64,000 nucleotides of DNA, from positions 1-64,000 of the IMG/VR virus record IMGVR_UViG_3300044591_002232; one strand, 5' to 3'. The first letter of the stretch is position 1. The number at the start of each line of letters is the position of its first letter. Positions 1,329-51,512 of the stretch are shown here, one piece after another. The translations under genes were made by a program, and so were the position numbers. The notes beneath the pieces are model-generated. The model worked only from the letters and a program-made list of their open reading frames with translations, was not told the origin of the DNA and made no database searches.

Positions 1329-1330
1329 TC

Positions 1331-2371: not shown

Positions 2372-2637
2372 TGAACAAGCTCTCCATTCTAACCACCGCC
2401 CTTGAAGGCCGCGATCACGAACTGCTCTCCTATCAAATCAACATCGACAACTACCGCCTGGCCATCGCCAAAATCAACGCCGACCACGCCGATAACGATG
2501 ATTTGCTTTCATTCCGTGATGATCTGCAGGCTCGCCTTGACGAAGAACTCCACCAGCATCTTCGCGCTCGCATCATCCGCGATGTGATCGCGGAGCAAGT
2601 TGCCGAGCTGTCCACCCAGGAGGAACTAATCTCATGA
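2371..2637 (+). CDS. Hypothetical helical protein of the tail cassette
   Basis: 88-aa ORF translationally coupled (TAATG, ATGA overlaps) to both neighbours. Confidence 0.75.
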   Translation: MNKLSILTTALEGRDHELLSYQINIDNYRLAIAKINADHADNDDLLSFRDDLQARLDEELHQHLRARIIRDVIAEQVAELSTQEELIS

Positions 2638-3203
2638 ACTACGTCCACATCGCTGCAGACGGTCAGCCCGAGTACCCTTACAACCTCTGGCAGCTCCGCA
2701 AAGCACACCCCAACATCTCATTCCCCGCTGAACCCACCCCGGAAGACCTGGCGCCCTTCCACGTCTTTCCGGTCACCATCAACCCTCAGCCCGATGGTTA
2801 CGACCACCGCCTGCAGATCGTTGAGCAGATCCCGCCAACCATCACCGCTGATGGCTGGGTGATCAATTGGGCACTGCGCGACACCACCCCAGAGGAACAG
2901 GCCAGCTACGACGCTGCCCACACTCCCGAACCTCAGTGGATGGGTTTCGGTATCGAGCTGGCGGTTAACCCCGCCATCACCGAACTGTACGACAGCATCC
3001 CCACCGCACTGGCCAATGGCCTGAGCATCGGCCTGTCTGAAGCCAGCAAGGGCGACACCCGCTTATTCATCGGTTTGTGGCAGCGAGTTTTAGCCACTGG
3101 TGGGGTTTCTCCCGAGCTACTGGGAGAAATCGGCGCTCTGGCCCATCAGTTCAACCTGCCGACCAGTTTCGTTGCTCAGATGATGCCACCGAACAATGAA
3201 TAA
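2634..3203 (+). CDS. Probable tail-fibre assembly/chaperone-like protein
   Basis: YPYNLWQLRKAHPNISFP...W N-terminus resembles phage tail-associated proteins; last gene of the GC-rich cassette. Confidence 0.55.
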   Translation: MNYVHIAADGQPEYPYNLWQLRKAHPNISFPAEPTPEDLAPFHVFPVTINPQPDGYDHRLQIVEQIPPTITADGWVINWALRDTTPEEQASYDAAHTPEPQWMGFGIELAVNPAITELYDSIPTALANGLSIGLSEASKGDTRLFIGLWQRVLATGGVSPELLGEIGALAHQFNLPTSFVAQMMPPNNE

Positions 3204-3241
3204 CCGCAGTGATCCGAAAAAATCTATCGGTTTACTAAACT

Positions 3242-3249
3242 TATAAATA
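3242..3249 (+). promoter_or_regulatory. T4-type late promoter TATAAATA
   Basis: Exact T4 late consensus 22 nt before the ATG at 3271. Confidence 0.7.
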
Positions 3250-3270
3250 AACAAAACTTATAATGTCCTC

Positions 3271-4251
3271 ATGAATTTCGTTAAATATGCATTGGAGAAT
3301 GGTGGAACAATTAAACCTCTACTTATAAACCCAGAAGACCTTTCGGGACCATCAATCACAAATCCTTCTGTCTTCATTTATCAGAACAGAATATTAGTCA
3401 ATCTTCGTAATGTAAATTATACATTATATCACGCAGAACTCAATCGGTTTGAGCATATGTGGGGTCCATTATCCTACATTCATCCAGAAAATGATATGCA
3501 CCTGAGAACCACAAATTACATTGCAGAACTAGATGACAATCTAGATACGGTTCACTATTCAAAAATAGATACTTCAGACTTTGATACCTATCAACCACAG
3601 TGGGATTTCGTGGGCCTTGAAGATGTTCGGTTAGTAGAATGGAATGATAAACTCTATGGTATTGGTGTTCGCAGAGACTTAGACGACAAAGGAACCGGAA
3701 GAATGGAAATTAGTGAATTTCAGATTTCTGATTATTCGGTCAAAGAAGTTTTTCGTTATCGTATTCCTGGACCCCCCCCAGATAAAGAATACTGTATGAA
3801 AAACTGTACTCCAATTCTAGATAAACCTTTTCATTTATTAAAGTGGTCTAATCCCACTGCACTAATGAAATTTGATATTACTGGAAAGGAAACAGAAGTC
3901 TTTCAAACTGACCCAAATCCTACTCTACAAACTGACCTAAGAGGTGGTTCTCAGGTAATTCCTTATAAAAACGGATACTTATCACTTCTTCACGAGACAC
4001 ATCTTTATAATTCAGAACAAGGAAGAAAAAACGCGACTTATCGCCATCGGTTTGTAATTTGGGATAAGGAATTTAAACTTCAAAAAGTATCAAAATTATT
4101 TTCGTTTATGAATATAAAAATTGAGTTTTGTTGTGGTCTTGTAGAATATAAAAATGATTACTTGATTACTTTTGGTGCTCAAGATAATGCTGCTTATATT
4201 TTAAAAGTTTCTAAATCATTTGTGGAGGATTTTATTCATGAACAAACTTGA
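3271..4251 (+). CDS. Beta-propeller glycoside hydrolase/phosphorylase-like protein (GH130/GH43-like clan)
   Basis: Motifs NPSV, GLEDVRL, KNCTP, LRGGSQ, IEFCCG and FGAQD are characteristic of this 5-blade family. Confidence 0.65.
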   Translation: MNFVKYALENGGTIKPLLINPEDLSGPSITNPSVFIYQNRILVNLRNVNYTLYHAELNRFEHMWGPLSYIHPENDMHLRTTNYIAELDDNLDTVHYSKIDTSDFDTYQPQWDFVGLEDVRLVEWNDKLYGIGVRRDLDDKGTGRMEISEFQISDYSVKEVFRYRIPGPPPDKEYCMKNCTPILDKPFHLLKWSNPTALMKFDITGKETEVFQTDPNPTLQTDLRGGSQVIPYKNGYLSLLHETHLYNSEQGRKNATYRHRFVIWDKEFKLQKVSKLFSFMNIKIEFCCGLVEYKNDYLITFGAQDNAAYILKVSKSFVEDFIHEQT

Positions 4252-6130
4252 AGGACTTCCAACTATTCATTACATTAGTTTAGAAGAAAGCCTAGACAGA
4301 AGAACTAATTTAGAAAATTGGTTTCAAAAATATAATATAACAAACTATGTTCCTCATTTATTCAAAAGATTTGAAAATTATAATCATAATTTAATCGGAA
4401 CAAATGTGCATCTTTTGGCGGAACATTCAAAAGGTCCGATTACTTCTCATTTATGTTTACTCAGGGAATTATACGAGACTTATGATGATGAATATTTTTT
4501 GATTGTTGAAGACGATTTGTCTTTAGAAACTGTTGAACACTGGAACTTTACCTGGAAGCAATTCTATCAAAATCTTCCTAAAGATTGGAATGGTATTCAA
4601 TTAACTATTGTAAGAGAATATAATGTTAAAGCGTATTCTTTTGAAGAAAGAAGAGATAAAGACTGGTGTGTTGCTGGGTATTTAATAAAAAGAAACTATG
4701 CAAAATATCTCTTAGACTTATATTATTTTGATACTGATTTTAATCTAAACACTAGTTTTATTCCCGTAGTTGAGGACGTATTATTTTTTCATACTAATCC
4801 AAACATATATTGTTTTCCTTTATTTGTTGAGGATTTTTATAATGCAAAATCAACTTACAGAAATCCAGAACTGGTAGATGATTGTCATCATAAATCTTAT
4901 CGTAATGTTTTAAATTGGTGGGAAAATAAAGGTAAAAATTTAACTATTAATCAAATAATGAATACACAACTTAATCACATTTATCAAGAACCTCAATTTG
5001 GTGAAAATTGGTTTTCATATCCAAATCTGTATAGGAAAATGATTGAAAAATTCCCATCAGGTTCCAAGTTTGTTGAAATTGGTTCTTGGAAAGGAAAATC
5101 TTCCGCATTTATGGCAGTTGAAATTGCAAATTCCAATAAAAACATTGAGTTCTATTGTGTAGATACTTGGGAAGGAAGTGTAGAGCATCAAGATATAGAC
5201 GATTTAAAATCTTTATATGACACATTTAACCAAAATATGATGCCTTTAAAAGGCTATCATATTCCTTTAAGAATGACTTCACTTGAAGCGGTAAAAACTT
5301 TTGAAGATAAGTCTTTAGATTTTGTTTTTATTGATGCTTCTCACGAATATGAAGACGTGAAAAAAGATATTATTTCTTGGTTACCTAAGGTAAAACCAGG
5401 TGGAATTATTGCCGGACACGATTACTATCTTAATGGGACTGACTTTTTCCCTGGAGTAAAGCAAGCGGTTAATGAGACACTAAAAATTGATGAATTAGAA
5501 TTTTCTGAAGATTGTTGGATGTATAAAGTAAAATCTATATCTAATGAATTAATAGAATATTCATTAGATACTGAAAATGCGGAAAAAAATTATAATCTCG
5601 CAAAGTGGTATGAAAGTCAGGGTCATACTGCACCAGCACATATCTATTACTTGAGAGCAGCAGAAAGAAGTGAAGATAATCTTTTGGCATACTCCGCATT
5701 AATTCGTGGGTCATTCTGCTATGGGGCACAAAAATCAAGAGATTCTAGTGAAAAAGTATTACTAGAAAATGCTCTTGTGTTGCTACCCAAAAGACCCGAA
5801 GCATATTATTTTCTTTCGTTGATATATGAAAGAAAACAAGAATGGCAACATTCTTACATTTATGCAACACTAGGTCTAAATTGCTATGAAAATAACGATG
5901 AATGCATAAACATTAATATTCCAGAATATTCCGGGAAACATTTGCTTATTTTTCAAAAGGCAATTTCTTCTTGGTGGTGGGGAAAAGGAGATGAAAGTAG
6001 AGGACTTTTAGAATTATTATGCGATAATTATTGGAATGTTTTAGATGTGACACATAAATCTTTAGTCGAAGAAAACGCAAAAAAAGTTGGAGCAAAATTT
6101 GAAAAAAGACTACATTTCAACTTTCAGTAA
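4238..6130 (+). CDS. Fusion: GT25-like glycosyltransferase + class I SAM methyltransferase + TPR
   Basis: ATG 4238 follows a GGAGG RBS. GT25-like motifs YISLEESLDRR and LIVEDD; MTase motifs VEIGSWKGKSS, FVFIDASHEY and AGHDY; C-terminal TPR-like helices (PKRPEAYYFLS). Confidence 0.8.
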   Translation: MNKLEGLPTIHYISLEESLDRRTNLENWFQKYNITNYVPHLFKRFENYNHNLIGTNVHLLAEHSKGPITSHLCLLRELYETYDDEYFLIVEDDLSLETVEHWNFTWKQFYQNLPKDWNGIQLTIVREYNVKAYSFEERRDKDWCVAGYLIKRNYAKYLLDLYYFDTDFNLNTSFIPVVEDVLFFHTNPNIYCFPLFVEDFYNAKSTYRNPELVDDCHHKSYRNVLNWWENKGKNLTINQIMNTQLNHIYQEPQFGENWFSYPNLYRKMIEKFPSGSKFVEIGSWKGKSSAFMAVEIANSNKNIEFYCVDTWEGSVEHQDIDDLKSLYDTFNQNMMPLKGYHIPLRMTSLEAVKTFEDKSLDFVFIDASHEYEDVKKDIISWLPKVKPGGIIAGHDYYLNGTDFFPGVKQAVNETLKIDELEFSEDCWMYKVKSISNELIEYSLDTENAEKNYNLAKWYESQGHTAPAHIYYLRAAERSEDNLLAYSALIRGSFCYGAQKSRDSSEKVLLENALVLLPKRPEAYYFLSLIYERKQEWQHSYIYATLGLNCYENNDECININIPEYSGKHLLIFQKAISSWWWGKGDESRGLLELLCDNYWNVLDVTHKSLVEENAKKVGAKFEKRLHFNFQ

Positions 6131-6279
6131 ATCAAAATAATTCGTATTATGCAAATTCTACTTCTTTAAATTTTGTTCCAAGGGTGGACGGAGGCCCAAT
6201 TAAACAAAATTGGTTAAGAAGAATTATATACTGGCCTAAACGTTTACCAAATGAACAACTCCAGGCATTAACCAGGTAG
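6103..6279 (+). pseudogene. Relic C-terminus of a LamG/ConA-like tail protein
   Basis: Start-less open frame ending ...WLRRIIYWPKRLPNEQLQALTR*, a C-terminal motif I recall from cyanophage tail proteins. Confidence 0.45.
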
Positions 6280-6356
6280 ACACTTTATAAATCGTCCACT
6301 AACTTAACATAAAGTCCAATAATCGTCTATTATTCTGCTATTCACCAAATTTTGTA

Positions 6357-7589
6357 ATGACCTCCATTATTCTTCGTCCTCATCAGGCGACGGCTCTTTC
6401 TTCTATGGGAGAAAACGATCTTGGTAAAATTATTCTTCCGACTGGTGCAGGTAAAAGTATTGTTTTTATCAAAAACACCATAGAGCAATTTAAATCTGAT
6501 ATTCCCCAGACTGTTTGCGTTGTTGCCCCAAGGATTCTCCTCGCGGTTCAACTTTCTGCTGATTACGAAAAGCACGTTAATAATGCGAAATATATGCATG
6601 TGCATTCTGGTAGTCGGCTAAGAAACTACCGCACTACCAATATAAAAGATATTCAAGAGTGGCATAATATCCATAAAGATGATCATAAACTTATTTTTAC
6701 TTCTTATAATTCCCTGAAGAAAATCACCGAGTCAAATATTAAGGTGAACACCTACAATTTTGATGAATGTCACAATTCTACTAAGAAGTCCTTCTTTCCA
6801 CACATTGAAGATGCAGTAAGGGAAGCAGACAAGAAGTACTTTTTTACTGCCACTCCTAAGAACTCTGCAATTCCAACAAAAAAACCCGGAATGAATATTG
6901 CCGAGGTTTATGGTCATGATATTTGTAAGATTCCTATGACCGAGATGGTATATGGTGGTTATGTTTTGCCTCCATTGGTGGTTAAGAAGGAAGTGAATAT
7001 TGAAGAAAGTATGGATGAAATGAATAATAATCTGATTCTAAAAACCTTGGACGAGGATACTCCCAAGAAGGTTCTTATTTCTGCGAAATCAACAAAATCA
7101 ATTATTTCTCTTCTTACTGAGACCGATTTTGTCTCTCAGATGAAGGACAGAGATTATAGTATTATGCATATAACTGCGGCTCACGGGGCATATATTGATG
7201 GTAAAGAGGTAAAGCGAGATGTGTTTTTTAGAACTTTGGATGAGTGGGGAAATGACGATTCTAAGAAGTTTGTTCTTCTTAACTACTCGATTCTTTCTGA
7301 AGGGATCAATGTCAATTCGTTGGATGCCGTGATCTTTATGAGAAATATGGATGCAATTGCCATGTTGCAAACCATTGGACGTGTGATCCGTCTTCATAAA
7401 GAAGATGCAGATCACATTGCTTCTGGTGAATTGCGGGTCGGGGATTATAAAAATTACAAGAAGCCTTATGGTATGGTAGTACTTCCTCACGGTGATTCCA
7501 AATCGAAATCAATTGCTTCCGATATTGAAAATTTAATTTATCGGTCATTTGTTGCAGGCGAAGTAGTTTCTCAGGAAATTGTAAAGTAG
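6357..7589 (+). CDS. Superfamily 2 (DEAD/DEAH-like, ResIII-type) helicase
   Basis: Q-motif LRPHQ, Walker A PTGAGKS, Walker B FDECH, motif III TAT, motif VI QTIGRVIR. Confidence 0.9.
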   Translation: MTSIILRPHQATALSSMGENDLGKIILPTGAGKSIVFIKNTIEQFKSDIPQTVCVVAPRILLAVQLSADYEKHVNNAKYMHVHSGSRLRNYRTTNIKDIQEWHNIHKDDHKLIFTSYNSLKKITESNIKVNTYNFDECHNSTKKSFFPHIEDAVREADKKYFFTATPKNSAIPTKKPGMNIAEVYGHDICKIPMTEMVYGGYVLPPLVVKKEVNIEESMDEMNNNLILKTLDEDTPKKVLISAKSTKSIISLLTETDFVSQMKDRDYSIMHITAAHGAYIDGKEVKRDVFFRTLDEWGNDDSKKFVLLNYSILSEGINVNSLDAVIFMRNMDAIAMLQTIGRVIRLHKEDADHIASGELRVGDYKNYKKPYGMVVLPHGDSKSKSIASDIENLIYRSFVAGEVVSQEIVK

Positions 7590-7684
7590 ACACTTTTTAA
7601 ACTGTCTACTTGTTAGATCAATTTCCTTCTTTATGGGGTATTCTTGGTTTGTCCTGTAAATGTTCACTACCGTAAATTCCAATT

Positions 7685-9010
7685 ATGTTCAAAATTTCTG
7701 AAAAAGCCAACCCTAATTATCTTGCGGAGATCGTTGTATTAAATAATCTGCGACCACACCCAAACGCAGATAGATTGCAAATCGCCACAATTCAAGGAAA
7801 TAGTGTGATTGTTTCTCTTGATGCCAAAGAAGGGGATGTTTATGTTTATTTCCCATTAGAGTGCGCCATAAATAAAGAATTTCTTTCTTGGAGTAATTCG
7901 TTTTCCGATAAGACACTTAATAACGACAAAGAAGTGGCTGGATTCTTTAATACGAAAGGTCGTGTGAGGGCAGTTAAACTCCGTGGAATCCCATCACAAG
8001 GTTATGCTCTTCCGGCCCAAAAATTTCTTGATTGGCTAGAAGAAAAGACTGGAAAATCCATTTCTCTTAAAGAAGAATGGATCGGAAAGGAGTTTGATTC
8101 ATATGATGATATTCTGATCTGTGAGAAATATGTAAGTCCTCTAGTCCTTAAAAATCAGAATAAAGAGAAAAAGAATCAAAAGAAAGTTGTTCGTGAGCCA
8201 AAAGTGGTGGACGGACAATTCCGCTTCCATCCTGATACTCTTCAACTGAAGAAATCTATTCATAATATCTCTCCAAATGATTATATTTCTATTACACGAA
8301 AACTTCATGGAACTTCCTGGGTGGCAAGTCGCCTTCTTTGTAATAAAAAACTGACTCGATTTGAAAAAATCCTGAAGCGTTTTGGTATCAAAATTCAAGA
8401 TACTCATTACGATCTTCTTTGGGCCTCTCGTAGAGTTCTAAAGAACGGTTTTCTAGAAATCGGGAATAAAGATCATTTCTATTCTTATGATCTCTGGGAA
8501 GAAATCGCCAAATCAGTCGAATATGCCATTCAAGATTCCATTACTCTTTATGGTGAAGCAGTGGGGTACACGAAAACCGGGGCGTACATTCAAACCGGAT
8601 ATGATTATGGCTGCCCCGCCGGGCAGTTTGCAACTTATGTCTACCGAATTACAACAACCAATCATTCTGGGCAGGTTTATGAATTTTCTCATAGGCAAGT
8701 CAAGGACTATTGCGAAAAATATGGTCTGAATATGGTTCCAGAGATTTATTATGGAAAAGCAAAGGACTTATATCCCGAACTTTCCGTGAATGATCATTGG
8801 CATCAAAACTTCCTTGATCGTCTTATTGGAGATTATCTTGAAAAAGACTGTGAACTGTGCAAATCTAAGAAAGTACCAGATGAAGGTGTCTGTCTAAGAA
8901 AGGATATTTTTGATTCTGAAATTTATAAACTAAAATCCTTCAAATTCCTAGAATGGGAAACTAAGGAATTGGACAACGAAAACTTTGTAGATTTGGAGTC
9001 AGAAAATTGA
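7685..9010 (+). CDS. ATP-dependent RNA ligase with N-terminal OB-fold (Rnl2/DRB0094-like)
   Basis: N-terminal PHPNADRL; nucleotidyltransferase motifs KLHGTS, LYGEAVG, EGVCLR and KLKS. Confidence 0.85.
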   Translation: MFKISEKANPNYLAEIVVLNNLRPHPNADRLQIATIQGNSVIVSLDAKEGDVYVYFPLECAINKEFLSWSNSFSDKTLNNDKEVAGFFNTKGRVRAVKLRGIPSQGYALPAQKFLDWLEEKTGKSISLKEEWIGKEFDSYDDILICEKYVSPLVLKNQNKEKKNQKKVVREPKVVDGQFRFHPDTLQLKKSIHNISPNDYISITRKLHGTSWVASRLLCNKKLTRFEKILKRFGIKIQDTHYDLLWASRRVLKNGFLEIGNKDHFYSYDLWEEIAKSVEYAIQDSITLYGEAVGYTKTGAYIQTGYDYGCPAGQFATYVYRITTTNHSGQVYEFSHRQVKDYCEKYGLNMVPEIYYGKAKDLYPELSVNDHWHQNFLDRLIGDYLEKDCELCKSKKVPDEGVCLRKDIFDSEIYKLKSFKFLEWETKELDNENFVDLESEN

Positions 9011-9531
9011 AAATCCGAAACCGGGCTATTCTTCTCTGTGGAGTGCCGACCTCAGGCAAATCTTCCTGGGTGGCACAAAACAGTGACGGTTATATGGTCA
9101 TTTCATCGGACAATATCATCGAAAATTATGCCAAAAATGTTGGCTCTACATATAATGATGTATTCGATGATTATATCGAAACTGCAATTGAATTGATGCT
9201 AGGTCAATTGCGGCATTTTGTTCACCAAGGACAAAATATTATTGTTGATCAGACGCATCTGACTCCAAAGGTACGAAAGCGGAAACTCAAAATGATTCCG
9301 GATCATTATGAGAAGATTGCTGTTTATTTTGAAATTTCTAAAGAAGAAATGTTCCAAAGAAATCATAATAAAGATCGAACCAAGACTATTCCAGATTTTG
9401 TTTTAGAATCTATGCATGGTTCTTATGTTCGGCCCACTATTGATGAGGGATTCTTGACCGTCTATAGCGGCGAAGAATTTTCTCTTGTGCCAGCCGAAAA
9501 ATTGTCACAACCGCAGGCCATTTCTGTTTAA
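9007..9531 (+). CDS. P-loop polynucleotide kinase-like protein (AAA_33)
   Basis: GVPTSGKS, ISSDNI, IIVDQTHL, R-lid; overlaps the ligase stop (TTGA). Confidence 0.8.
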   Translation: MKIRNRAILLCGVPTSGKSSWVAQNSDGYMVISSDNIIENYAKNVGSTYNDVFDDYIETAIELMLGQLRHFVHQGQNIIVDQTHLTPKVRKRKLKMIPDHYEKIAVYFEISKEEMFQRNHNKDRTKTIPDFVLESMHGSYVRPTIDEGFLTVYSGEEFSLVPAEKLSQPQAISV

Positions 9532-12275: not shown

Positions 12276-12746
12276 ATGACTTCTAAATCTCAACTGCAAA
12301 CCAAAATTCAAGAACTGGAATCCGAGCTTCAAGAGTTCAAACAACAACTGAATAACTACAAAGAGACACCAACCATCGAAACCGCCAAAGTTGGTGATGT
12401 TCTAGAAGACGGTTGTATTGTACTCAAAAAAGAAAATGGTCTCGCTCTTTTGGTGGCCCCAAAATCAACCGAGGTTTATGATACTTGGAGTAAAGAGTTT
12501 TCAACAGTATTCAAGAAACTAGAAAAACAAGGATTTAATCCTTCTCAGTTCTTTATTCCAACCATGGATCAACTTAATCTTGCCTATAAGACCATTCCTC
12601 AACACTTCGCCAGCAACATCTATTGGTCTTCTACAGAGTTTAATGCTACGGGTGCTTACTATCAGGGCTTTAGCGGTGGTAGCATCTTCAGCTTCCGTAA
12701 GACGGCCGCGTGCAGTGTGCGTGCCTTCCGGTGTGTTACTTATTGA
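12276..12746 (+). CDS. DGR-target-like protein: coiled coil + C-type-lectin-fold (DUF1566-like) variable domain, copy 1
   Basis: C-terminus YWSSTE..A....F..G......K.....VRAFR is typical of DGR CLec targets; paralogue at 50780-51250. Confidence 0.8.
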   Translation: MTSKSQLQTKIQELESELQEFKQQLNNYKETPTIETAKVGDVLEDGCIVLKKENGLALLVAPKSTEVYDTWSKEFSTVFKKLEKQGFNPSQFFIPTMDQLNLAYKTIPQHFASNIYWSSTEFNATGAYYQGFSGGSIFSFRKTAACSVRAFRCVTY

Positions 12747-12935
12747 ACCTTGAATTTTGATACTTGATACTTAAGCAAAGTTATGAAATCATATTCAGCC
12801 CACTCGGACACCGAATTCTACGAGACAGACAATTTAAAAGAGGTAATTGAAGTTGCCCAGTCCATGGCCGAACATTTCGGCTCATCATACGTCATAAACA
12901 ACCAAACTAACGAAATTATTGAGAGGTTTTAAAAA

Positions 12936-26500: not shown

Positions 26501-27582
26501 CCTGCCAATCCGACAGTTAAAATATTTTTTGCCGCATTAATGTCTCTATCGTGAACTGCTCCACAATCATGACAAGTCCATTCACGGACACTTAACGGCA
26601 TAGAAGATTGAATAGAACCACAAGAACTACAAGTTTTACTTGAAGGGAAAAATCTATCAACTTTCAATAGAGTTCTCCCATACCAGTCGCACTTATATTT
26701 TAATAAAAAAATAAATTGCGACCAAGAAACTTCAGCAATTGCTCTTGCTAATTTGTGGTTTTTCAACATACCAGACACATTTAAGTCCTCAACCACTATC
26801 GTTTGATTCTCACGAACAAGTTGAGTGCTTATTTTGTGATGATAATCTAATCTTGTATCTACAATCTTTTGATGTAGTTTAGCAACTTTAACTCTTGCTT
26901 TCTCACGATTTTTAGAACCTTTCTGCTTTTTATATAATCTTTGATTGAGGATTTTTAATCTTTTTTGGACTTTTCTTAACCACTTTGGATTGGTAATTTT
27001 ATCACCGTTAGAAGTAGCAAAGAAACAATCAATACCTAAATCAAGACCTATCACTTTATCTGTTGGTTCAAGTTGTTTGATTTCTTCTTGACACAACATA
27101 CTAATCATCCATCTTCCGCTTGGTTCAAGTGTGATGGTTATAGTAGAAGGATAAGAAGGGATTTGACGAGACCAACGAATATTCAAGGGTTCTTTTGATT
27201 TTGCTATATAAATCTTACCTTCTTTATACTTAAAGGCAGATTTAGTTAATTCACAAGAGTTTCTGTTTTTTCTCTTCTTAAATCTTGGATATTTACTTTT
27301 CTTTTGGAAAAAGTTTTTAAATCCAGTTTGTAGATGTTGAAGAGATTGTTGTAGAGGAACACAAGAAACTTCATTTAACCATTCATACTCTTCTTTTTTC
27401 TTGAGTTCCGTCAAAAGAGCACTTGTTTGATTGTATCCTACAGAGTTTTTATTTTGATGCCATTCTTTGGTTCTATAATCAAGAAAATGATTATAGACCA
27501 CACGGCAACAACCAAGAGTTTTTCTTAAAAGAACCTCTTGACTTTCTGTAGGATAAAATCTAAACTTGTATGCTCTATACAT
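26449..27582 (-). CDS. tnpB: IS200/IS605-type TnpB RNA-guided nuclease, no adjacent tnpA
   Basis: RAYKFRFYP, GLDLG, VVEDL, CSSCG/CHDCG, DRDINAAKNI; all three RuvC acidic residues present. Confidence 0.95.
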   Translation of the reverse strand: MYRAYKFRFYPTESQEVLLRKTLGCCRVVYNHFLDYRTKEWHQNKNSVGYNQTSALLTELKKKEEYEWLNEVSCVPLQQSLQHLQTGFKNFFQKKSKYPRFKKRKNRNSCELTKSAFKYKEGKIYIAKSKEPLNIRWSRQIPSYPSTITITLEPSGRWMISMLCQEEIKQLEPTDKVIGLDLGIDCFFATSNGDKITNPKWLRKVQKRLKILNQRLYKKQKGSKNREKARVKVAKLHQKIVDTRLDYHHKISTQLVRENQTIVVEDLNVSGMLKNHKLARAIAEVSWSQFIFLLKYKCDWYGRTLLKVDRFFPSSKTCSSCGSIQSSMPLSVREWTCHDCGAVHDRDINAAKNILTVGLAGFACGAEIRPEANLLKA

Positions 27583-28364: not shown

Positions 28365-29676
28365 CTAAAATACTCAAATACATAAAATCCAGAAAAACAA
28401 TCTACGTTCCTTCACTTTGGCTCGGTATTTTGTTAGTTGCTTTTTTCTTTCCACAGTATGGTTTGTGGTTTATGTTTGGAACTGCTTGGGGAGTATTGTG
28501 GATGGTCGCGTACAATTGGTATCACGACAAATGATTGATTATGCTTTGATTGAGTACGAACTCATCTTGGAAGAAGTCGCAAAACTTCCAAGAGCAAGCG
28601 CCACAGACACTTGCGGAACCATCCCTAGTGTGCTAGACTTGCTGTACCAACGACTTTTGGATTATGACTGTTGAAGAATTGATTGAAAAACTAAAAGAGT
28701 TTCCTCTTGACTCAAAAGTGAAGGTTTATGATGATTATTGGGGAGAACGTATAGACCCTCTTATTGATATGTGGGAAAAAGAAGTTGTTTTTTATTCTGA
28801 CCGACGATGACTAATATAATTATTCCTAAAATAGCATACCTTCCTCTTGAATTTACACTTCCTGTGGATGAGTTCTTGAAAATGTGGGACGAAACCTTAG
28901 GAGAACCTACACAAAAAGATTATGATAATTATTGTCGTTCTTGTGCCGTAGAAGTTTTTTACGGTACTTTGAGTGAAGATATTGAAGAAAGTATTCGTTT
29001 ACGACAGGACAATTGAGATGAACTTCAGTGATTTACCCGACAACTCTTGGGAAAAAGTAATGTATAAGGTTGTAGAGTTTATTGGTGGGGATGCCCCATA
29101 CTTATGTAATTGGAGTGATGAAATTCCAACACCGCAAAAAGTAGCAGAAGAGATTGTTTCTATGGTAGCATATCTTGATGATACCGACCCAGATAAGTTT
29201 ATTGAATCCTTTAGAAAGTTTTGTAAAAAATGACTGAACAAAATAGAATCTATTTTTCATACCGAGATGTAAACAGAGAACTACAACACGCATCTATAAC
29301 TCATGAGGATGCTGGTCCATTACTTGGAGATATGATGACGCAATTGTATGAATATATTGCCTGGATAAAAAATTCACCTGGAGGTAAAAATGACTGAACG
29401 CTCAAAATATTATCCAGTTTCTATTGAGAAACTACAAAAGGCAAGCATAGCAGATTTGGCATATCTCATTGCGCCCATGAATATTGGCATAGATTATGAG
29501 TATTTTAAACAAATCAAACATGTTCTTGATATACCAAAACCCTCAAAATCTTTAGAAGAATTCAAACAAGAACTAGATAGTAAATTTGTTGACTTTTTGG
29601 TAAAAACCAAGAGGAAATTTGCTGTATCTAAAGAGAGTGCCGAATAGTAATAAAAACCAATAAAAATCTAAAAACT

Positions 29677-30876
29677 CTATTGATTTTCTAGACGCTTCAA
29701 CGCAGACGCTAAATGATGTTGGACACCATTTAGACTTACTTCCGCTCCACGTCCGTAATCGACATACTCTGCCGATGTTAATTCTTGACCCGAAAGGTCT
29801 AACCACCCTTTTTTAAGGATGTTGATAGAGGCATTTAAGTCTCTATCGCGATGAGAGCCACAAGAAGGACAAGTCCATTCACGAACACTTAAAGGCATCT
29901 TGTCTTCTTTATGTCCACAGTTAGAACAGGTCTTGGAACTAGGGTAAAACCTATCTATTTTGGTCAAAGTTTTTCCGTACCAGTTACACTTGTACTCCAA
30001 CATAGAAACAAAAGTAGACCAAGAGGCATCACTAATGGATTTTGCAAGTTTGTGGTTCTTTAACATTCCAGAAACATTTAAGTCTTCAACAACAATCAAA
30101 TCAAATGTCTTAACAAGTTCTGTTGAAATATTATGCAAGAAATAATTTCTTGAGTTAGTAATGTTTTCGTGTACTTTAGCAACTTTAATACGTTGTCTAT
30201 TGTAACGATTACTACCTTTCTTTTTACGACTTAAATGTTTCTGTGCTTTTTTAAGTTTAGATTGGTTCTTTCTAAACCATCTTGGGTTATTGATGACTTG
30301 ACCATTTGATAAAGTCATTAGTTCTTTTAAACCCAAATCAATACCTACTACTTTACCAGTAGAGGGTATTGGATTGAGTTCTTGTTGGACTAAAATTGAA
30401 ACAAAATACTTTCCGGTTGGAGTTTTAGAAACAGTAATGCTTCTAAAATCGGCTTCTTCAGGGATATTTCGGTCCAGAACAATTTTGACCCAACCAATTT
30501 TTTCGATCCTTATTGAACATTTTTCTTGATCAAGTTTAAATCTAGTTTTTTCTGGAAGCCTAAATGATTGTCTATTGGTCTTTTTCTTGAATTTCGGCTT
30601 TCCAAGTTTAACCTTCCTTTTTTTGTTAAAGTATTGTTTCTTAAACTCAACAAAATCCATTCTTTTTTGTTGAAGTGTTGATGCCGATACTTCTTTAAGG
30701 AACTCAAACTCCTCTTGGTCTTTTAGTGTTTTTTCATTTACTATGGTACCATCATTATTGTTAAAATTTTCAACTAACTTATTCCAAACAAAACGAACAC
30801 AACCAAAAGTTTTAGCAAATAAAACCTCTTGTTCTTTTGTAGGATAAATCCTATATTTGTATGCTTTTAAATGCAT
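29677..30876 (-). CDS. tnpB: IS200/IS605-type TnpB, no adjacent tnpA
   Basis: KAYKYRIYP, GIDLG, VVEDL, CSNCG/CPSCG, DRDLNASINI; RuvC triad intact. Confidence 0.95.
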   Translation of the reverse strand: MHLKAYKYRIYPTKEQEVLFAKTFGCVRFVWNKLVENFNNNDGTIVNEKTLKDQEEFEFLKEVSASTLQQKRMDFVEFKKQYFNKKRKVKLGKPKFKKKTNRQSFRLPEKTRFKLDQEKCSIRIEKIGWVKIVLDRNIPEEADFRSITVSKTPTGKYFVSILVQQELNPIPSTGKVVGIDLGLKELMTLSNGQVINNPRWFRKNQSKLKKAQKHLSRKKKGSNRYNRQRIKVAKVHENITNSRNYFLHNISTELVKTFDLIVVEDLNVSGMLKNHKLAKSISDASWSTFVSMLEYKCNWYGKTLTKIDRFYPSSKTCSNCGHKEDKMPLSVREWTCPSCGSHRDRDLNASINILKKGWLDLSGQELTSAEYVDYGRGAEVSLNGVQHHLASALKRLENQ

Positions 30877-30882
30877 GTCACT

Positions 30883-30983
30883 TTAATTGGGTCGTTATAT
30901 CTATTTAGTAAATTTTATTTTTAGGGAGAGATTTATTCTCTCCCGCTTGAAAAGAACGACCCAATCAAGCACTTTTATTTAGT
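30883..30983 (-). promoter_or_regulatory. Twin late-promoter boxes and nested hairpins upstream of tnpB
   Basis: ACTAAATA at 30976-30983 and 30902-30909; 14-nt inverted repeat 30883-30896/30955-30968 enclosing a GGGAGAGA/TCTCTCCC hairpin. Confidence 0.7.
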
Positions 30984-31174
30984 AAAGTTTTTATTGGAAA
31001 TTTATTGATTTTATGCATTTTTGTATTTATACCCATATTTTTCTCAAGATGTAAAAAAATTGCCCAGGCATCCGGGGTTTTAGAGACCCTCAAGGACACC
31101 TGATCAACTGGCACAATTACCCATAAACACCCCCACTAATCCCCTAAACTACAATTGCCTTAAACAAAACACCC

Positions 31175-45973: not shown

Positions 45974-46507
45974 TTAAATAATGTGCCAATCGCCGCCACG
46001 ACAAATTATGTTGATTGAATCATAAGGTACTTCAATAATGTACTCATCATCACCGTCAATTAATGAGCCATCCAAAGTCGTAATGGTGACTTTACGATTT
46101 CCGAGTGGTGGACCCATTTCTGCCTTTACGATGATCTCATAACAGTCGATGCAGTTTTCAGGTAGTGTAATAGTAACAGGTTCGTTGCTGTTGACACCGA
46201 TATAGTAATCATCGCAAGTAGCATCATAATCATCTGAAACCAGGATGCTTTTGCATTTACAGGTACACACTCCTGGCTCCCCTGGGGGTCCTGGGGGTCC
46301 TGGGGGTCCTGGGGGTCCTTCATTGCAGTGGTTGATAGTGTCCCTATCATCAATTTTGATGATAGTTTTATCGCCACGATCATTCAACATCGATGTTATT
46401 TCAGATCGAGTTGAATTAATGGCACCCTCTAGGGCTGGGTCATTATTTCTTTGATATTGGGCCAAAAGATTATAAAGATCAATGAGTTTTCTTTCTGCTG
46501 AGTCCAT
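45974..46507 (-). CDS. Short-collagen (GPP)4, Cys-rich protein with a fibre-head-like C-terminal domain
   Basis: GPPGPPGPPGPPGEPG-VCTCKC, then DYYIGVNS..VTITLP..IIVK..IDG..PY.S. Confidence 0.8.
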   Translation of the reverse strand: MDSAERKLIDLYNLLAQYQRNNDPALEGAINSTRSEITSMLNDRGDKTIIKIDDRDTINHCNEGPPGPPGPPGPPGEPGVCTCKCKSILVSDDYDATCDDYYIGVNSNEPVTITLPENCIDCYEIIVKAEMGPPLGNRKVTITTLDGSLIDGDDEYIIEVPYDSINIICRGGDWHII

Positions 46508-46523
46508 AGTTATTCTCCTTTTT

Positions 46524-46547
46524 AAAAAAGGGGGAGTTACCTCCCCC
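46524..46547 (-). terminator. Intrinsic terminator inside the minus-strand operon
   Basis: Minus strand GGGGGAG-GTAA-CTCCCCC followed by a U-run, between the first and second genes. Confidence 0.75.
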
Positions 46548-46566
46548 AGATAACTACTGAATTAAA

Positions 46567-47361
46567 TCAGCGTACAGCGTTGCTGGTTGAGGACTGACCA
46601 ACACCGGCCATGGTTCCGAAGTTAACCATACCTTGACGGGTCTCAGCAATTTGGCTGTTTAGGGCATTTAGCTGAGAGTTAACCTGGGAAGACAGGGCTG
46701 CAAATTGCGTATTGACGAGACCATCTCTGGCACCCCAATAGTCGTGGCGGCAATGTTGGAGATCAGTGTTGCGCTCAATAAGAAGACGATTGAGTTCATC
46801 ATTCTTGAGAGAATTGATGAGGTCACGGGTCTTCTCGTTTTCATAACCGACCTGCTTGCTAAGTTCAAACTTGCTCTCGGCAATTTCCTTGCTGAGTTGA
46901 GATTGACCTAGGGCAACAGCGGCGGCAACTTTAGCGGACTCAAGAGCAGTAGCAGTGGCCCCCCTTTCAGCAGTGAGAAGAATCTCGGTGCTGAGTTTTT
47001 GGGAGGCCATGTCTGTAGTTGCTTTTAGAGCCGCAACATCACGGGAAGTATCAAAATCTCTTGCTTGGCCAGCAAGATAGAAATCAGTGGCTCTTTGCTG
47101 AATCTTATCAGCGGCCTCATCGACTTTAACCTGAGTATGATAACCAGTGGTTAAAATATCACGGTTGGTTGATTCAGCGTGATCGGCAATTGCATACTTG
47201 ATTTCGCCTTGACCGACTGCATTAGCATAACGGTTATCGGCTGAGCGAGTAGCAACATCATAACGAATCTCGCCGCGCTCTACAGAACCTTCTCTACGAA
47301 TGTCTGAGTGCTGACCGGCAAGAATAGACCAGGGATCCGGTGCATAAACTGTGTCTGGCAT
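46567..47361 (-). CDS. 264-aa hendecad/coiled-coil protein with a Q/N-rich C-terminal motif
   Basis: AGGAG RBS before ATG 47361 (MPDTVY); 11-residue periodicity GEIRYDVATRS/ADNRYANAVGQ/GEIKYAIADHA. Confidence 0.85.
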   Translation of the reverse strand: MPDTVYAPDPWSILAGQHSDIRREGSVERGEIRYDVATRSADNRYANAVGQGEIKYAIADHAESTNRDILTTGYHTQVKVDEAADKIQQRATDFYLAGQARDFDTSRDVAALKATTDMASQKLSTEILLTAERGATATALESAKVAAAVALGQSQLSKEIAESKFELSKQVGYENEKTRDLINSLKNDELNRLLIERNTDLQHCRHDYWGARDGLVNTQFAALSSQVNSQLNALNSQIAETRQGMVNFGTMAGVGQSSTSNAVR

Positions 47362-47599
47362 TTGTTTTTCTCCTAAGGAAAAGAAAGGGTGGTTTGTTGG
47401 TAACACAATCTAATTCCTTCCTGACATAATGTCAGACGAGTCGGTTCTACAGGCGGCTGCAAATGAGTCGTCTGAGATTATTTCTCTTAGAATTGGATTA
47501 TGTTACCCAATTAGAGGAGAAGCATTAATGAAAGAGCCATTTCTGGAATCTTTTAGTAATACATCTTATTCTCTAAAGAGGAGAATTTCGTCTCCTGTT

Positions 47600-47863
47600 T
47601 TATTTAGTAAATTCGGAACGCCATTTTAAAAACCCGGCAATTGTATTTGGGTATTTTGGTTTTGCCCGACCTCTTGGTTTCTTTTGGGTTTTTATAAAAC
47701 ACTCATAATCAGACCAATTAAATGTTGGAATGGATCGATCTTGCTCAAGGCTTACCCAAAAGGTGGATTCATTTTTTAAGTGATCTTTCCACAAGGTAAA
47801 GGTGGCAAAAATTAATAACCAACCGAGTTTTATGTTTGAACAGAATTTTTTAATAGAAATCAT
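47600..47863 (-). CDS. Hypothetical basic protein
   Basis: 87-aa ORF with a basic C-terminus. Confidence 0.5.
   Translation of the reverse strand: MISIKKFCSNIKLGWLLIFATFTLWKDHLKNESTFWVSLEQDRSIPTFNWSDYECFIKTQKKPRGRAKPKYPNTIAGFLKWRSEFTK
47601..47608 (-). promoter_or_regulatory. Late-promoter-like ACTAAATA heading the minus-strand operon
   Basis: Same box as the other late-like sites, ~240 nt upstream of ATG 47361. Confidence 0.55.
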
Positions 47864-47906
47864 ATGCTCTTTTAATGAACTTAATATTATATATGGGGTT
47901 TAGGGC

Positions 47907-47935
47907 TTGACAAATTGGTGGATCCGTGCTAGTGT
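47907..47935 (+). promoter_or_regulatory. Canonical sigma70-type promoter
   Basis: TTGACA-17 nt-TAGTGT with an upstream TG; drives the gene at 47958. Confidence 0.7.
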
Positions 47936-47957
47936 GGAGCACCAGACCAGATGGAGC

Positions 47958-48155
47958 ATGACTGATTTAATTACTTTTACACAAACATCAGACGAGCCAT
48001 ATTTACGGCACGATTACAAAATCCACTTCATAAATAAGAAGACCAGAACATTTAACAATTACCAGGACGTACTTCAGACTTGGTTTCAGACACCAAGTGA
48101 ACTTTTAGATTATGTCGAGATTTTAGACTACCGAGAAAAAGCGAAGGGGTTTTAA
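47958..48155 (+). CDS. Hypothetical protein (MTDLITFTQTS..)
   Basis: GGAG RBS; YxRHxYK motif. Confidence 0.7.
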   Translation: MTDLITFTQTSDEPYLRHDYKIHFINKKTRTFNNYQDVLQTWFQTPSELLDYVEILDYREKAKGF

Positions 48156-48205
48156 AATGCAAATTAACTGGTTTAACGTATTGATAGATCTTTATATTAT
48201 CTGGT

Positions 48206-48622
48206 ATGGATTTAATTACGGAAAAAATAAAGATGATAAGTAAACCAATTTTAGGAACAGAAAATAAAACAAAAATGTCGTGGGCCGAGTATATTTTTAC
48301 TCACGTTCTTCCTACCTGGGTTCAGGTTTTTAGAATGAACTTTAGAATCTGGTCTGACCTAATGACAGATAATTTAGATAATTATGCTCTTCTAAAAAAT
48401 GATGATCCACTAGAAGAATGTTTGGGTTGGTTTTGGTCTAGTCTCGGTGAAGATGAGGTTTATCCAAAAGAGTTTCTAGAACATCTACTTCAGATGGTTG
48501 ATGATATTGACACTGGTAAGGTAAAGACTTATACATTAGAAGAATGTAGGGAAGACCTAAAACTTTTAGGAGTGGACGATTCTGAAAGTGACCACTTAGG
48601 CTCCAAATCTGGTTTAAATTGA
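48206..48622 (+). CDS. Hypothetical protein
   Basis: 138-aa ORF. Confidence 0.65.
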   Translation: MDLITEKIKMISKPILGTENKTKMSWAEYIFTHVLPTWVQVFRMNFRIWSDLMTDNLDNYALLKNDDPLEECLGWFWSSLGEDEVYPKEFLEHLLQMVDDIDTGKVKTYTLEECREDLKLLGVDDSESDHLGSKSGLN

Positions 48623-48655
48623 GTTAAACTGTGAAAGTTCAAAGGAAAATTATTA

Positions 48656-48940
48656 ATGACTGACCCTATCCACATTGCACTAGACCGACTACATGACTAT
48701 GCAGTTGGCCATCCTAATCATGACACTGATGAGATAGTGGAAGCCGCCATCGCCGCCATCGCCGCCGAACGGGAAGCATGTGCGCGGATTTGTGATAAGC
48801 AATACGAAAGGGCACGAACCAGCACAGGTGCAGCACGAGCCGATGCCTGCGCCACGGCTATTCGCGCCCGCACCGCCCTGACAAAAGAACAATTTACCGC
48901 TTCTAGTCAGTTTATCGAAAAAGATGATGACCAAATTTAG
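48656..48940 (+). CDS. Chimeric hypothetical protein spanning the AT-to-GC junction
   Basis: AT-rich N-terminus, then GC-rich AIAAIAAEREACARIC. Confidence 0.6.
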   Translation: MTDPIHIALDRLHDYAVGHPNHDTDEIVEAAIAAIAAEREACARICDKQYERARTSTGAARADACATAIRARTALTKEQFTASSQFIEKDDDQI

Positions 48941-49448
48941 ACAGCTGCCTGGCCAAGATGTCTTAAGGGAGCTTTTCCGCTACAGCGACTCCGATGGCGC
49001 ATTGTTCTGGAAGTATCGCCATAACAGTCAAATCGATCTGAGCAAACCCGCTGGCTGGCTGCAGCAAAATGGCTATCACGGGATTGCTGTGAACGGAGTC
49101 AAGTACAAGAGACATCGTATCATCTGGTGTTTCTTTAATCGTGATCCCAGGGAAATGGAAGTGGATCATATTAACGGAATCAGGAATGATGATAGGATCG
49201 AGAATCTGAGATTGGCTACCCGAACTCAGAATCAATACAACCGTCCCGTCCTTTCTACCAATAAGTGCGGACTAAAAGGTGTTTCACCTCACCATAACAA
49301 GTGGCGTGCGCAAATTCAAGATAGCAATGGACGGAATAAGTTTTTAGGTACTTTTGCTACACCAGAAGACGCTGCAGCAGCCTACGCAAAGGCTGCTCTT
49401 GAGCTTCAGGGTCAGTTTGTCCACCAATCCCTTACCACTCATGTCTAG
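48924..49448 (+). CDS. HNH endonuclease with C-terminal AP2 domain (homing-endonuclease type)
   Basis: HRIIW, EVDHINGIRNDDRIENLRLAT, GVS..KWRAQI..FLGTF.TPEDAAAAY. Confidence 0.9.
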   Translation: MMTKFRQLPGQDVLRELFRYSDSDGALFWKYRHNSQIDLSKPAGWLQQNGYHGIAVNGVKYKRHRIIWCFFNRDPREMEVDHINGIRNDDRIENLRLATRTQNQYNRPVLSTNKCGLKGVSPHHNKWRAQIQDSNGRNKFLGTFATPEDAAAAYAKAALELQGQFVHQSLTTHV

Positions 49449-50124
49449 TCATCAGTTGCCCAGCAAAAATAACCACCCATCCCGCCCGGACCTGTCCAAA
49501 ATGACAAGCAATCTTTTATCGGATGGTGGCTACGAAGCCAGCTCAATGTGGACTGGCCATGGAACACGGCAGGTGGCCCAGCACGAGCCTGAGGTGGCGG
49601 GGCCAGTCACAGATGGCCGTCCCATGAACCAGTCTTACTGGTTGGCATTACTCAACCACGATGCCTATGCAGCATCATTCCAATCAGTGGGCCAGTACCG
49701 ATCAGCATTGATCGAACGTGCGTCATCACCACGGGCCCAGCCCGAGCGAGAGGGACCGACAGATGAAGAGTGGGAAGACCTAAAGGAGCGCCTGTGGGAT
49801 CAGTACCAAACCGTTGGTTATCAAGGCGAGCGCTTTATGTACGACGCCGATTTCTACACGGCGCTTGATGTTGCCCGCCAAGAGATCACCCGCCACGCCC
49901 GCCCCACCATCGAGCCGGTGCCCGTGGCTGAGCGGCTGCCGGGACCGGAGGATTGTGATGCCAAAGGAAGATGCTGGGTCGGATGCCCTGAATTCAGCGA
50001 CGACGGCGATTACGGACCGACCACGTTTAACCCATCTTGGGAGCTGGCACCTTTCGCCCAAGGGGACACCCACTGGCGCCCCCACAACGCCCTGCCGGTG
50101 CCCGGTGCGGAGGTGCAATCGTGA
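49441..50124 (+). CDS. GC-rich hypothetical protein with a DUF551-like C-terminus
   Basis: EPVPVAERLPGPEDCD..GRCW...THWRPH. Start at ATG 49441 or 49501 is uncertain. Confidence 0.65.
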   Translation: MSSHQLPSKNNHPSRPDLSKMTSNLLSDGGYEASSMWTGHGTRQVAQHEPEVAGPVTDGRPMNQSYWLALLNHDAYAASFQSVGQYRSALIERASSPRAQPEREGPTDEEWEDLKERLWDQYQTVGYQGERFMYDADFYTALDVARQEITRHARPTIEPVPVAERLPGPEDCDAKGRCWVGCPEFSDDGDYGPTTFNPSWELAPFAQGDTHWRPHNALPVPGAEVQS

Positions 50125-50779
50125 AGGTCGAAGACTTCAGAGCCAGCATCATCGCCGCAGCCGCTCTCCTTCCACCTGAGCCCCGAGGCCCAAAATCAGG
50201 CACGACCTGCCTCTATCGCGGTGGCGAGGTTCTGTGGTGGGCCGAGCCTGATCCATGGTCCCCCATTCTGTCGGTGCCCGGTGCCTGAGGGGGAGGTAAT
50301 GGCACGACCTTAGCCGAGAATGACACTTTAAGAACTGTCCACTTCTGACAAAATTCTAGAAATCCCTAGATACAATAAGATCAAATCAATTCAGGTTTCC
50401 AATGTCCCGCACCCATCGCCAAACTTCTTACAATAAATGTGCTCTTAGGAGCCCCAAAACCCTGAACGAAAAACGTCAAATTGATTCTTTTCTCACCGAT
50501 GATGAAACTGTGGAGTTTCAGATTTCTGGTATGAATAGGATCAAAAATCGCCGGTCCATTCCCACACATCACGACGACATTGTTTGTTCTTCTTATTATG
50601 AGACTGATTATGACCACCACTGAAAAAACTGCGTATTCTAAGTCTATGTTAGCAGATGCCGAAGATTTTCTCTGGAAAAACTTTGGTATCTCTGTAGGAA
50701 CCCCCGATTATGAATGGCCTCAAGATCAAATCATCTCAGAGGCTGTAAAACGCGGCTGGAAATTTAGTTTTTATTGATT

Positions 50780-51250
50780 ATGACAACCAAAACACAACTT
50801 CAAACCAAAATTCAAGAACTAGAAGAAGAACTTTCTTCTTTTAAACAACAATTGAATAACTATAAAAACCATCCAACTATTCAAGAGGCATCTGTAGGTG
50901 ACGTTCTTGAGGATGGCTGTATCGTCCTTAAAAAAGAAAATGGTGTCGCTCTTTTGGTGGCCCCAAAATCAACCGATGTTTATGCTACTTGGAGTAAAGA
51001 ATTCCCTAAATTCTTCAAGAAACTAGAAGAACAAGGATTTAATCCTTCTCAGTTCTTTATTCCAACCATGGATCAACTTAATCTTGCCTATAAGACCATT
51101 CCTCAACACTTCACCAGGACCATCTATTGGTCTTCTACAGAGTTTAATGCTACGGGTGCTTACTGTCAGGGCTTTAGCGGTGGTAGCATCTTCAGCTTCA
51201 GTAAGACGATCAAGAACAGCGTGCGTGCCTTCCGGTGTGTTACTTATTGA
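50780..51250 (+). CDS. DGR-target-like CLec/DUF1566-like protein, copy 2
   Basis: Paralogue of 12276..12746; YWSSTE...VRAFRCVTY. Confidence 0.8.
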   Translation: MTTKTQLQTKIQELEEELSSFKQQLNNYKNHPTIQEASVGDVLEDGCIVLKKENGVALLVAPKSTDVYATWSKEFPKFFKKLEEQGFNPSQFFIPTMDQLNLAYKTIPQHFTRTIYWSSTEFNATGAYCQGFSGGSIFSFSKTIKNSVRAFRCVTY

Positions 51251-51512
51251 ACCTTGACACTTGAGGAACTGTCCATACTTCTGCCCGCACCACAAATGCG
51301 GGCTTTATAATATTCACAGTTAATCCAAATTCAATGGACACCTTCGGATTTTATGATGCATCAAATTGGCCCCAAGATCCTAAACAAAACTCGGCTTGGA
51401 ATGCCTATGCAAGGTCCACCACTCGGCGGTATCTTTCACCCGGAATCGCCCCTGAATGTTTTGTTGTAAGGCATCGTGGCTATAAGGGATACTACGTTTT
51501 TGGTAAATAAAC

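Follow-up and report, generated by a model that had tools for sequence, protein, structure and literature searches.

Proteins of the DUF1566/Lcl_C fold class make up DGR target category 'd' (CLec2), which is exemplified by LdtA of Legionella, and roughly half of its members are short and consist of a single domain (Wu et al. 2018, PMC5758913). In the same survey, remote DGR targets were expected not to occur in phages (PMC5758913). Here, we describe a gene of this class, in the following named copy 2, that resides in a virus genome from lake-water metagenomes. The analyzed window comprises the first 64 kb (64,000 nucleotides) of a 249,820-bp virus record (IMGVR_UViG_3300044591_002232), and it also contains a close paralogue, copy 1. 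A sequence-only reading had viewed the two copies as DGR targets that are diversified and at the same time kept alike by one template. The view of copy 2 as a DGR-type target with an adenine-mutagenesis signature stood up to the analysis, but the presence of a template in the genome and the proposed cause of the identity did not. The cassette is absent from this genome, and we consider it likely that copy 2 is an orphaned DGR target and that the identity of copies 1 and 2 goes back to gene conversion or duplication.

Copy 2 and its paralogues

The copy 2 ORF is located on the plus strand (50780-51250, with the stop codon at 51248-51250) and its translation yields a protein of 156 aa, which is composed of an N-terminal helix followed by a C-type-lectin-like domain of the Lcl_C/DUF1566 type. 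The AlphaFold (AF2) model, for which 123 family sequences served as input, has a pLDDT of 93 and consists of a long helix, assigned with DSSP to codons 4-28 (50789-50863, plus strand), and a compact alpha/beta domain. The helix, as modeled, may have a coiled-coil or oligomerization role, and weak coiled-coil-type Pfam matches were obtained for it as well. With Pfam family Lcl_C (PF07603, formerly DUF1566), the proteins of the copy family scored 16.9-20.2 bits (E 0.008 for copy 2) and matched with residues 106-152 only, such that the gathering threshold of 34.9 bits was not reached by the copies; a precomputed PF07603 match is present for one family member (P0113). The Lcl_C fold of copy 2 is nevertheless supported, because the best match of the model in the PDB, as identified with Foldseek, was the C-terminal domain of Legionella Lcl (8q4e, E 4e-6, TM 0.71 by target). 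The next matches were C-type lectin-like proteins. The variable region (VR) comprises codons 112-147 of 156 (51113-51220, plus strand) and lies at the C-terminal end of this C-type-lectin-type fold, according to the model and the Foldseek matches. The copy 2 protein would be a small ligand-binding module, with the last approximately 36 codons forming its binding surface.

Alignment of copy 2 to the template repeats (TRs) of the related phages L146, L159, and L156, which are described below, revealed a TR-homologous stretch on the plus strand from 51113 to 51235 (codons 112-152), which ends with ...TTCCGG; the limits of this homology at the 5' and 3' ends are those measured for TR and VR in L146. 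The VR is followed by an invariant 3' element (51221-51257, plus strand), which consists of the GC-rich VR end, an IMH-like VR-specific tail, and 7 nt past the stop codon. Its sequence is the same in all of copies 1-3 and nearly so in the true DGR targets of the relatives. In the VRs that adjoin bAvd-TR-RT, the tail is identical in L146 and L159/160 and nearly identical in L137, while the TR copies of the relatives depart from the VR copies directly after TTCCGG. Judged from these alignments, the 3' element of the copies is a putative conserved recognition element that matches that of the cassette-adjoining targets.

Copy 1 (12276-12746, plus strand) also encodes 156 aa and has its VR at 12609-12716. 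A genome-wide search for further paralogues uncovered a third full copy outside of the window (copy 3, genome positions 68141-68611) and a distant fourth Lcl_C protein of 218 aa, also outside of the window (133516-134172, Pfam E 5e-5). The fourth protein has a VR-like C-terminus, which ends with ...NVRAFRRIAL, and it may belong to the targets of a different, older DGR lineage.

The protein family and the cassettes of related phages

A word search retrieved 739 relatives of copy 2, nearly all of which have a length of about 156 aa (155-159) and are unannotated. In an alignment of 118 members the scaffold is nearly invariant, whereas the entropy exceeds 3 bits at residues 115, 126, 129, 131, 133, 136, 138, 140, 144, and 146 and amounts to 2.5 bits at residue 134. 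The hypervariable columns contain residues of the NNC/NNT type (N, S, T, I, Y, F, C, H, R, L, D, A, G, and V), and Asn is the commonest residue at several of them. In these columns of the 118 proteins, K, E, Q, and M are absent, and W occurs once (residue 136). Columns of the ACN type (e.g. 114, 143, and 145) vary mainly among T, A, S, and P, and columns of the ATY type (122 and 137) mainly among I, V, F, and L, which are the residue sets expected when the single A of ACN or ATY is altered.

A pattern search led to a complete DGR in the 37.8-kb phage L137, with two tandem 156-aa targets, Avd, TR, and an RT of 343 aa. A third target is located elsewhere on this contig, and the 3' ends of the VRs are almost identical to those of the copies described here. 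Relatives of the L137 RT are encoded on L146 (a 247-kb contig), L149 (a 170-kb contig), and several contigs of 20-36 kb (L155-160). L146 and L149 show synteny with this genome and a DNA identity of about 70%, and L156, L159, and L160 share shorter homologous segments with 70-75% identity. The usual order in the relatives is fibre genes, target(s), bAvd, TR, RT, a 2OG oxygenase, and modification enzymes, e.g. sulfotransferases or carbamoyltransferases; some contigs carry another target past the modification enzymes. With these results, about 740 'hypothetical' 156-aa proteins of lake-water jumbo phages can be assigned to the DGR variable proteins, and the cassette of the family is located beside the tail-fibre genes in relatives.

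TRs were found in L137, L146, and L155-160. Type A is present in L146, L159, and L160, type B in L155-158, and the latter matches the scaffold of copy 3. The TRs of L159 and L160 encode exactly the template that had been predicted from the protein family, with Asn at every hypervariable column; the TR of L146 is of type A except for Thr at 139 and 141 and Pro at 150. The VRs of the relatives differ from their own TRs by 13-22 adenine-site mismatches and 0-1 others. For L155-L158 (JGI sample 3300075147, positions 8289-9335), an identical RT is present on twelve contigs of one sample, and the VRs of the two tandem targets differ among the four contigs read, one of which has a frameshifted target (141 aa). 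Judged from the assembled contigs, DGR activity in a relative seems to be directly visible here within one sample.

The adenine signature of the copies

For the 118 family members, 86.8% of the non-template residues can be reached from the L146 TR by adenine-only changes, and the same test yielded 13%, 3.5%, and 2.1% when only C, G, or T, respectively, was allowed to change. The closest real template found for the copies is the type-A TR of L159. Compared with the type-A TR, copy 1 is changed at 21 of 39 adenine sites versus 9 of 84 others (p 6e-7), and copy 2 at 17 of 39 adenine sites versus 12 of 84 others (p 1e-3). Copy 2 had been thought to be closer to an A-rich template than copy 1, which is true to a modest extent, as it has kept 22 of the 39 adenines of the L159 template versus 18 in copy 1; copy 3 also keeps 22. 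At codons 144-146, where this difference had been noticed, copy 2 indeed reads ATC AAG AAC (51209-51217) and copy 1 GCC GCG TGC (12705-12713). Copies 1-3 have 9-14 non-adenine mismatches to the TRs of the relatives, which do not include their cognate TR, whereas the true targets of the relatives have 0-1. The non-adenine differences of copies 1 and 2 from the type-A TR are largely shared, synonymous, and of a lineage type. The cognate template of the copies would be a TR that is related to, but other than, those found in the relatives.

The variability might, in principle, have arisen without any retroelement, by ordinary mutation under strong diversifying selection combined with shuffling between paralogues. 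Many paralogues with clear recombination mosaics exist, as shown below, and the genome lacks a cassette, all of which would fit. However, the spectrum is adenine-specific when real TRs are used as a reference, the NNC codon logic extends across 118 proteins, and homologous targets adjoin bAvd-TR-RT with zero non-adenine mismatches. We give this explanation scarcely any credence.

Absence of a DGR cassette from the genome

All parts of a cassette were searched for in the complete record of 249,820 bp. Pfam family PF00078 (RVT_1) had no match at E<=10, the L137 RT protein had no match in the genome with either of two programs, and a scan for YxDD motifs gave no hit within an RT-like context. Neither PF22296 (bAvd) nor the L137 Avd protein, the latter again used with two programs, had a match in the genome. 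For the TR, a genome search and blastn (word size 7) with all three VRs returned nothing besides the three coding copies and 12-15-nt matches attributable to chance. As positive controls, the RT of L146 matched PF00078 with E 9e-18 and its Avd matched bAvd with E 2e-17.

The place of the cassette in the relatives, as determined from synteny with L146, L149, and L159, corresponds to the interval between the fibre genes and a helicase gene (800-7600, plus strand). In the relatives this interval contains target, bAvd, TR, and RT; here, it contains ORFs of 346, 88, 189, 326, and 636 aa and no DGR part. Pfam matches in the interval were limited to a methyltransferase domain, accompanied by a weak GT25-like match, and a GH130-like match below threshold. 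Three other contigs with 99% identity share this DGR-less arrangement. A point against the designation as orphaned is that the DGR-bearing jumbo-phage relatives have no more than 70-75% DNA identity with this genome.

The 346-aa ORF (1331-2371), which sits where the relatives have fibre-distal genes and the DGR cassette, holds seven tandem units of 141-144 nt (1294-2442, 64-89% alike). Both the start (1-1328) and the end (249520-249820) of the record fall into a tandem repeat of the collagen-like Gly-X-Y kind (mostly G-I-Q), which belongs to a fibre gene. The 'direct terminal repeat' of the record is a 127-nt exact overlap with a 63-nt period within this collagen-like repeat, so that the repeat number and the circular closure are uncertain. 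That the 'terminal repeat' hides a cassette was rejected, as the expected interval is interior and is identical in three other contigs.

A cognate TR, i.e. one with zero non-adenine mismatches to copies 1-3, was not found in the viral, metagenome, and species-genome collections. A first TR-like pattern (N-Q-N-F-N-N-G-N codons) matched more than 120 viral contigs, which turned out to carry generic DUF1566-class TRs of approximately 40-kb phages, so that this pattern lacks specificity for the family. Of the narrower patterns, some had no match, and others led to L137, to L154, an unrelated metagenome DGR, and to L161, an unrelated TR of a gut bacterial MAG, none of which provides the cognate template. 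The L137 TR was rejected as the donor of copy 3 because of 14 non-adenine mismatches between the two sequences.

Origin of the identity between copies 1 and 2

In agreement with the sequence-only reading, the N-termini of the two copies have diverged, while the middle and the VR scaffold are near-identical: 54 of 234 nt differ in codons 1-78, many of them synonymously, versus 1 of 99 nt in codons 79-111. The N-terminal differences comprise 41 of 141 nt in codons 1-47 and 13 of 93 nt in codons 48-78. In the VR (codons 112-147), 12 of 108 nt differ, and 11 of these 12 changed bases fall in codons with a differing amino acid; in codons 148-157 all 30 nt are the same, and the identity extends 7 nt past the stop codon. 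The concentration of differences in the VR is not due to chance, as 12 of 108 VR nucleotides differ compared with 1 of the 129 adjoining nucleotides (codons 79-111 and 148-157). Seven of the 12 VR differences are at adenine positions of the relatives' TRs, and three more have an A in one copy; with five of 12 at positions that are non-A in these TRs, the pairwise enrichment is borderline (p 0.05).

The near-identical tract (51014-51257 in copy 2 and 12510-12753 in copy 1, both on the plus strand) begins about 100 nt upstream of the TR homology. Furthermore, most hypervariable codons carry the same mutated residue in both copies (G126, G131, S133, G134, S136, F138, and F140). The sameness of the copies is thus best explained by DNA copying between paralogues, because the identity starts at about codon 79 while the TR homology covers only codons 112-152, and because independent retrohoming would have randomized the mutated residues that are shared. 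Copy 3 resembles copy 1 in its N-terminal two-thirds (17 of 333 nt differ) and has a different VR (38 of 108), which characterizes the copy family as a recombination mosaic. Based on these comparisons, the near-identical tract of copies 1 and 2 most probably arose by gene conversion or duplication.

The sequence-only reading had instead assumed that an active DGR in this genome homogenizes copies 1 and 2 by repeated retrohoming from one template while varying their tips. The identical scaffold, and copy differences that are confined to the VR and mostly involve adenines, are what such a system would produce. Against it, neither RT nor Avd nor TR was found in 249,820 bp by Pfam, with the RT and Avd proteins of a relative, by motif, or by sensitive blastn, the identity reaches about 100 nt upstream of the TR homology, and non-template residues are common to both copies at most hypervariable codons. 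An in-genome DGR is thus very improbable, and the observation that would overturn it, a gene-conversion or duplication tract in a genome without a template, is what was found.

Turnover of the variable regions

Contigs that are near-identical to this genome (247-250 of 250 nt in the flanks) differ from it by 16-20 nt in the VR-containing 250-nt window at the copy-2 locus and by 38 nt in that at the copy-1 locus. One contig of about 99% identity carries the other scaffold type at the orthologous locus, and one genome with a divergent orthologous VR shares the DGR-less interval. As the VRs at corresponding loci are different between genomes with about 99% identity, VR turnover continued recently, while the rest of the genome barely changed. 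Three routes could account for it: the cassette may have been lost recently, homing may proceed in trans upon co-infection, or the phage may have recombined with relatives that bear a DGR. In all four lake runs, the assembled contigs break up over 50915-51250, which could be caused by the paralogue repeats alone, and two lake-run variants (51120 C>A and 51165 G>A) correspond to copy-1 states and could be explained by paralogue cross-mapping; in these assembled contigs, paralogues and alleles are not separable.

One of these routes is that the orphan targets are still rewritten in trans, with a co-infecting related phage or the host supplying Avd, RT, and TR-RNA, and the 3' element allowing the cDNA to home. 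An Avd-TR-RT unit is able to work in trans from a plasmid in the Bordetella system (PMC5758913). The 3' element is conserved to the base compared with true targets in phages of only about 70% identity, the VRs at orthologous loci differ between genomes of about 99% identity that have the DGR-less interval in common, and the VR scaffolds of types A and B match the two TR types of the relatives. On the other hand, the cognate TR is absent from the collections searched, recombination with DGR-bearing relatives or recent cassette loss would result in the same pattern, and the lake-run contigs, which do not part paralogues from alleles, show no in-sample hypervariation. Continued action in trans is therefore rather unlikely. 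If it occurred, it would be the reason why a jumbo phage that lacks a reverse transcriptase retains three intact targets. Hypermutation would then amount to a public good at the population level, individual genomes could do without the cassette, and the base-for-base conserved 3' element would be a shared address.

The promoter cassette downstream of copy 2

The 3' sequence shared with copy 1 runs through the stop codon to 51257 (...AACCTTGA), and the motif GACACTTGAGGAACTGTCCA follows at 51256-51275, overlapping its last bases. This arrangement, described before as a target welded to an operator, is real but ordinary: the 'operator' (51256-51275, plus strand) is the upstream element of the promoter cassette of the next gene, which sits beside a short intergenic space. 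Genome-wide, GACACYT-N4-AACTG occurs at 27 sites on the plus strand and 4 on the minus strand, compared with 0 in shuffled sequences. With the exception of one site at 235817, the plus-strand sites lie between 7.5 and 81 kb (26 of 27; 7589-59142 in the window and further to genome position 80717), examples being 12198, 50322, 51256, and 55844. About 20 of the 27 have a -10-like (TATAAT-like) box 49-52 nt downstream of the motif start, an ATG follows the motif by 78-83 nt in 16 of 27, and a GC-rich hairpin with a T-rich tail is often present between the motif and the -10-like box. The motif is partly palindromic (GACA-N10-TGTC). From its composition and spacing, we regard the repeat unit as a promoter cassette, and the motif may be a binding site for a phage regulator or the hallmark of a promoter class that is specific to the phage and serves the block of small plus-strand genes.

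Copies 1 and 3 have their own cassette about 80 nt upstream of the ATG (12198 and 68060), whereas copy 2 belongs, as third gene, to a small operon that begins downstream of the cassette at 50322. A small ORF downstream of copy 2 (51334-51510, plus strand) is served by the cassette at 51256, with a motif-to-ATG distance of 78 nt. A scan for terminator-like sequences detected a GC-rich hairpin (51283-51303) with a T-rich tail running into TATAAT (51306-51311), and this segment (51283-51311, plus strand) probably represents both the terminator of the copy-2 operon and the -10 box of the next gene.

In copies 1 and 3 and in the true targets of the relatives, the conserved 3' flank continues ...AACCTTGAATTTTGA..., whereas the promoter element takes the place of this flank after AACCTTGA in copy 2 and in the orthologues of copy 2. 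As VR differences persist among these orthologues, the shortened 3' flank has not stopped VR change, whichever route it took.

The region 46000-50300 of the window, directly before the copy-2 operon, has a G+C content of 43-47% versus about 36%, and each of the four lake runs has an accumulation of additional short contigs of other origin at 49885-49936; this region may be a conserved or mobile segment. Elsewhere in the window, a gene segment is present in two diverged copies (26534-26800 and 29831-30097) at a distance of about 3.3 kb, and positions 29645-30994 match an IS605 OrfB/Cas12f-like TnpB gene of L149 (14516-15712) at 75%, from which it follows that the window carries transposon genes of the TnpB type.

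Discussion

The analyses above show the target identity and fold of copy 2, the adenine signature, the cassettes of the relatives, the lack of a cassette in this genome, and the mosaic structure of the copies. The following order of events, and the route by which the VRs continued to change, we infer from the comparisons. In the clade of this phage, the cassette is located beside the tail-fibre genes and comprises an adjacent target, bAvd, TR, and a 343-aa RT. The AAC/AAT-rich TR would be copied by an adenine-error-prone reverse transcriptase, and the cDNA would be pasted into every gene that ends with a matching GC-rich, IMH-like 3' element, even tens of kb away. The present genome has kept three targets with intact 3' elements, with other genes in the place of the cassette. 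Gene conversion or duplication between paralogues would then have made copies 1 and 2 alike from codon 79 to 7 nt beyond the stop codon. Thereafter, the VRs would have been altered further by mutagenic homing or by the import of already mutated alleles, because the 12 later differences are found only in the VR and mostly at template-adenine positions.

If this is correct, DGR targets can survive the loss of their mutator or exist separately from it, and surveys that start from the RT miss orphan targets. The locus also offers a testable system for two questions, i.e. whether phage-borne DGRs act across co-infecting genomes, and how much 3' sequence a target needs, given that copy 2 has 7 nt past the stop codon before the promoter element.

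Like the DUF1566/Lcl_C class of targets, copy 2 has its VR at the extreme C-terminus of a short, mostly one-domain C-type-lectin-like protein, and it shares the scaffold YWSSTE...NA...N.NF.NG...K...VR..R, in which template AAC/AAT codons are diversified. In contrast to this class, it has an N-terminal coiled-coil-type helix and no lipoprotein signal, and it resides in a 250-kb phage among small early-type genes, with no cognate cassette in the genome. The cassettes of the relatives resemble the DGR of Bordetella phage BPP-1 (Mtd, Avd, TR, and Brt) in the order target, Avd, TR, and RT beside the tail-fibre genes; the mechanism proposed for them is likewise the same, with adenine-specific mutagenesis, a GC-rich VR end, and a VR-specific tail unlike the TR copy. 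Unlike BPP-1, the relatives carry more than one target, in part at a distance of tens of kb from the RT, and these targets belong to the Lcl_C class and not to Mtd, while RT, Avd, and TR are absent from the present genome. Scattered targets with the same 3' element and one cassette are also known from Treponema denticola and other remote DGR targets (PMC5758913). In contrast to those systems, the targets of the phage clade lie 12-68 kb from the place of the cassette, a distance that the large genome allows, and the present member keeps the targets only. In summary, copy 2 is a DGR target of the DUF1566 class, and its orphaning in a large phage genome is an uncommon feature.
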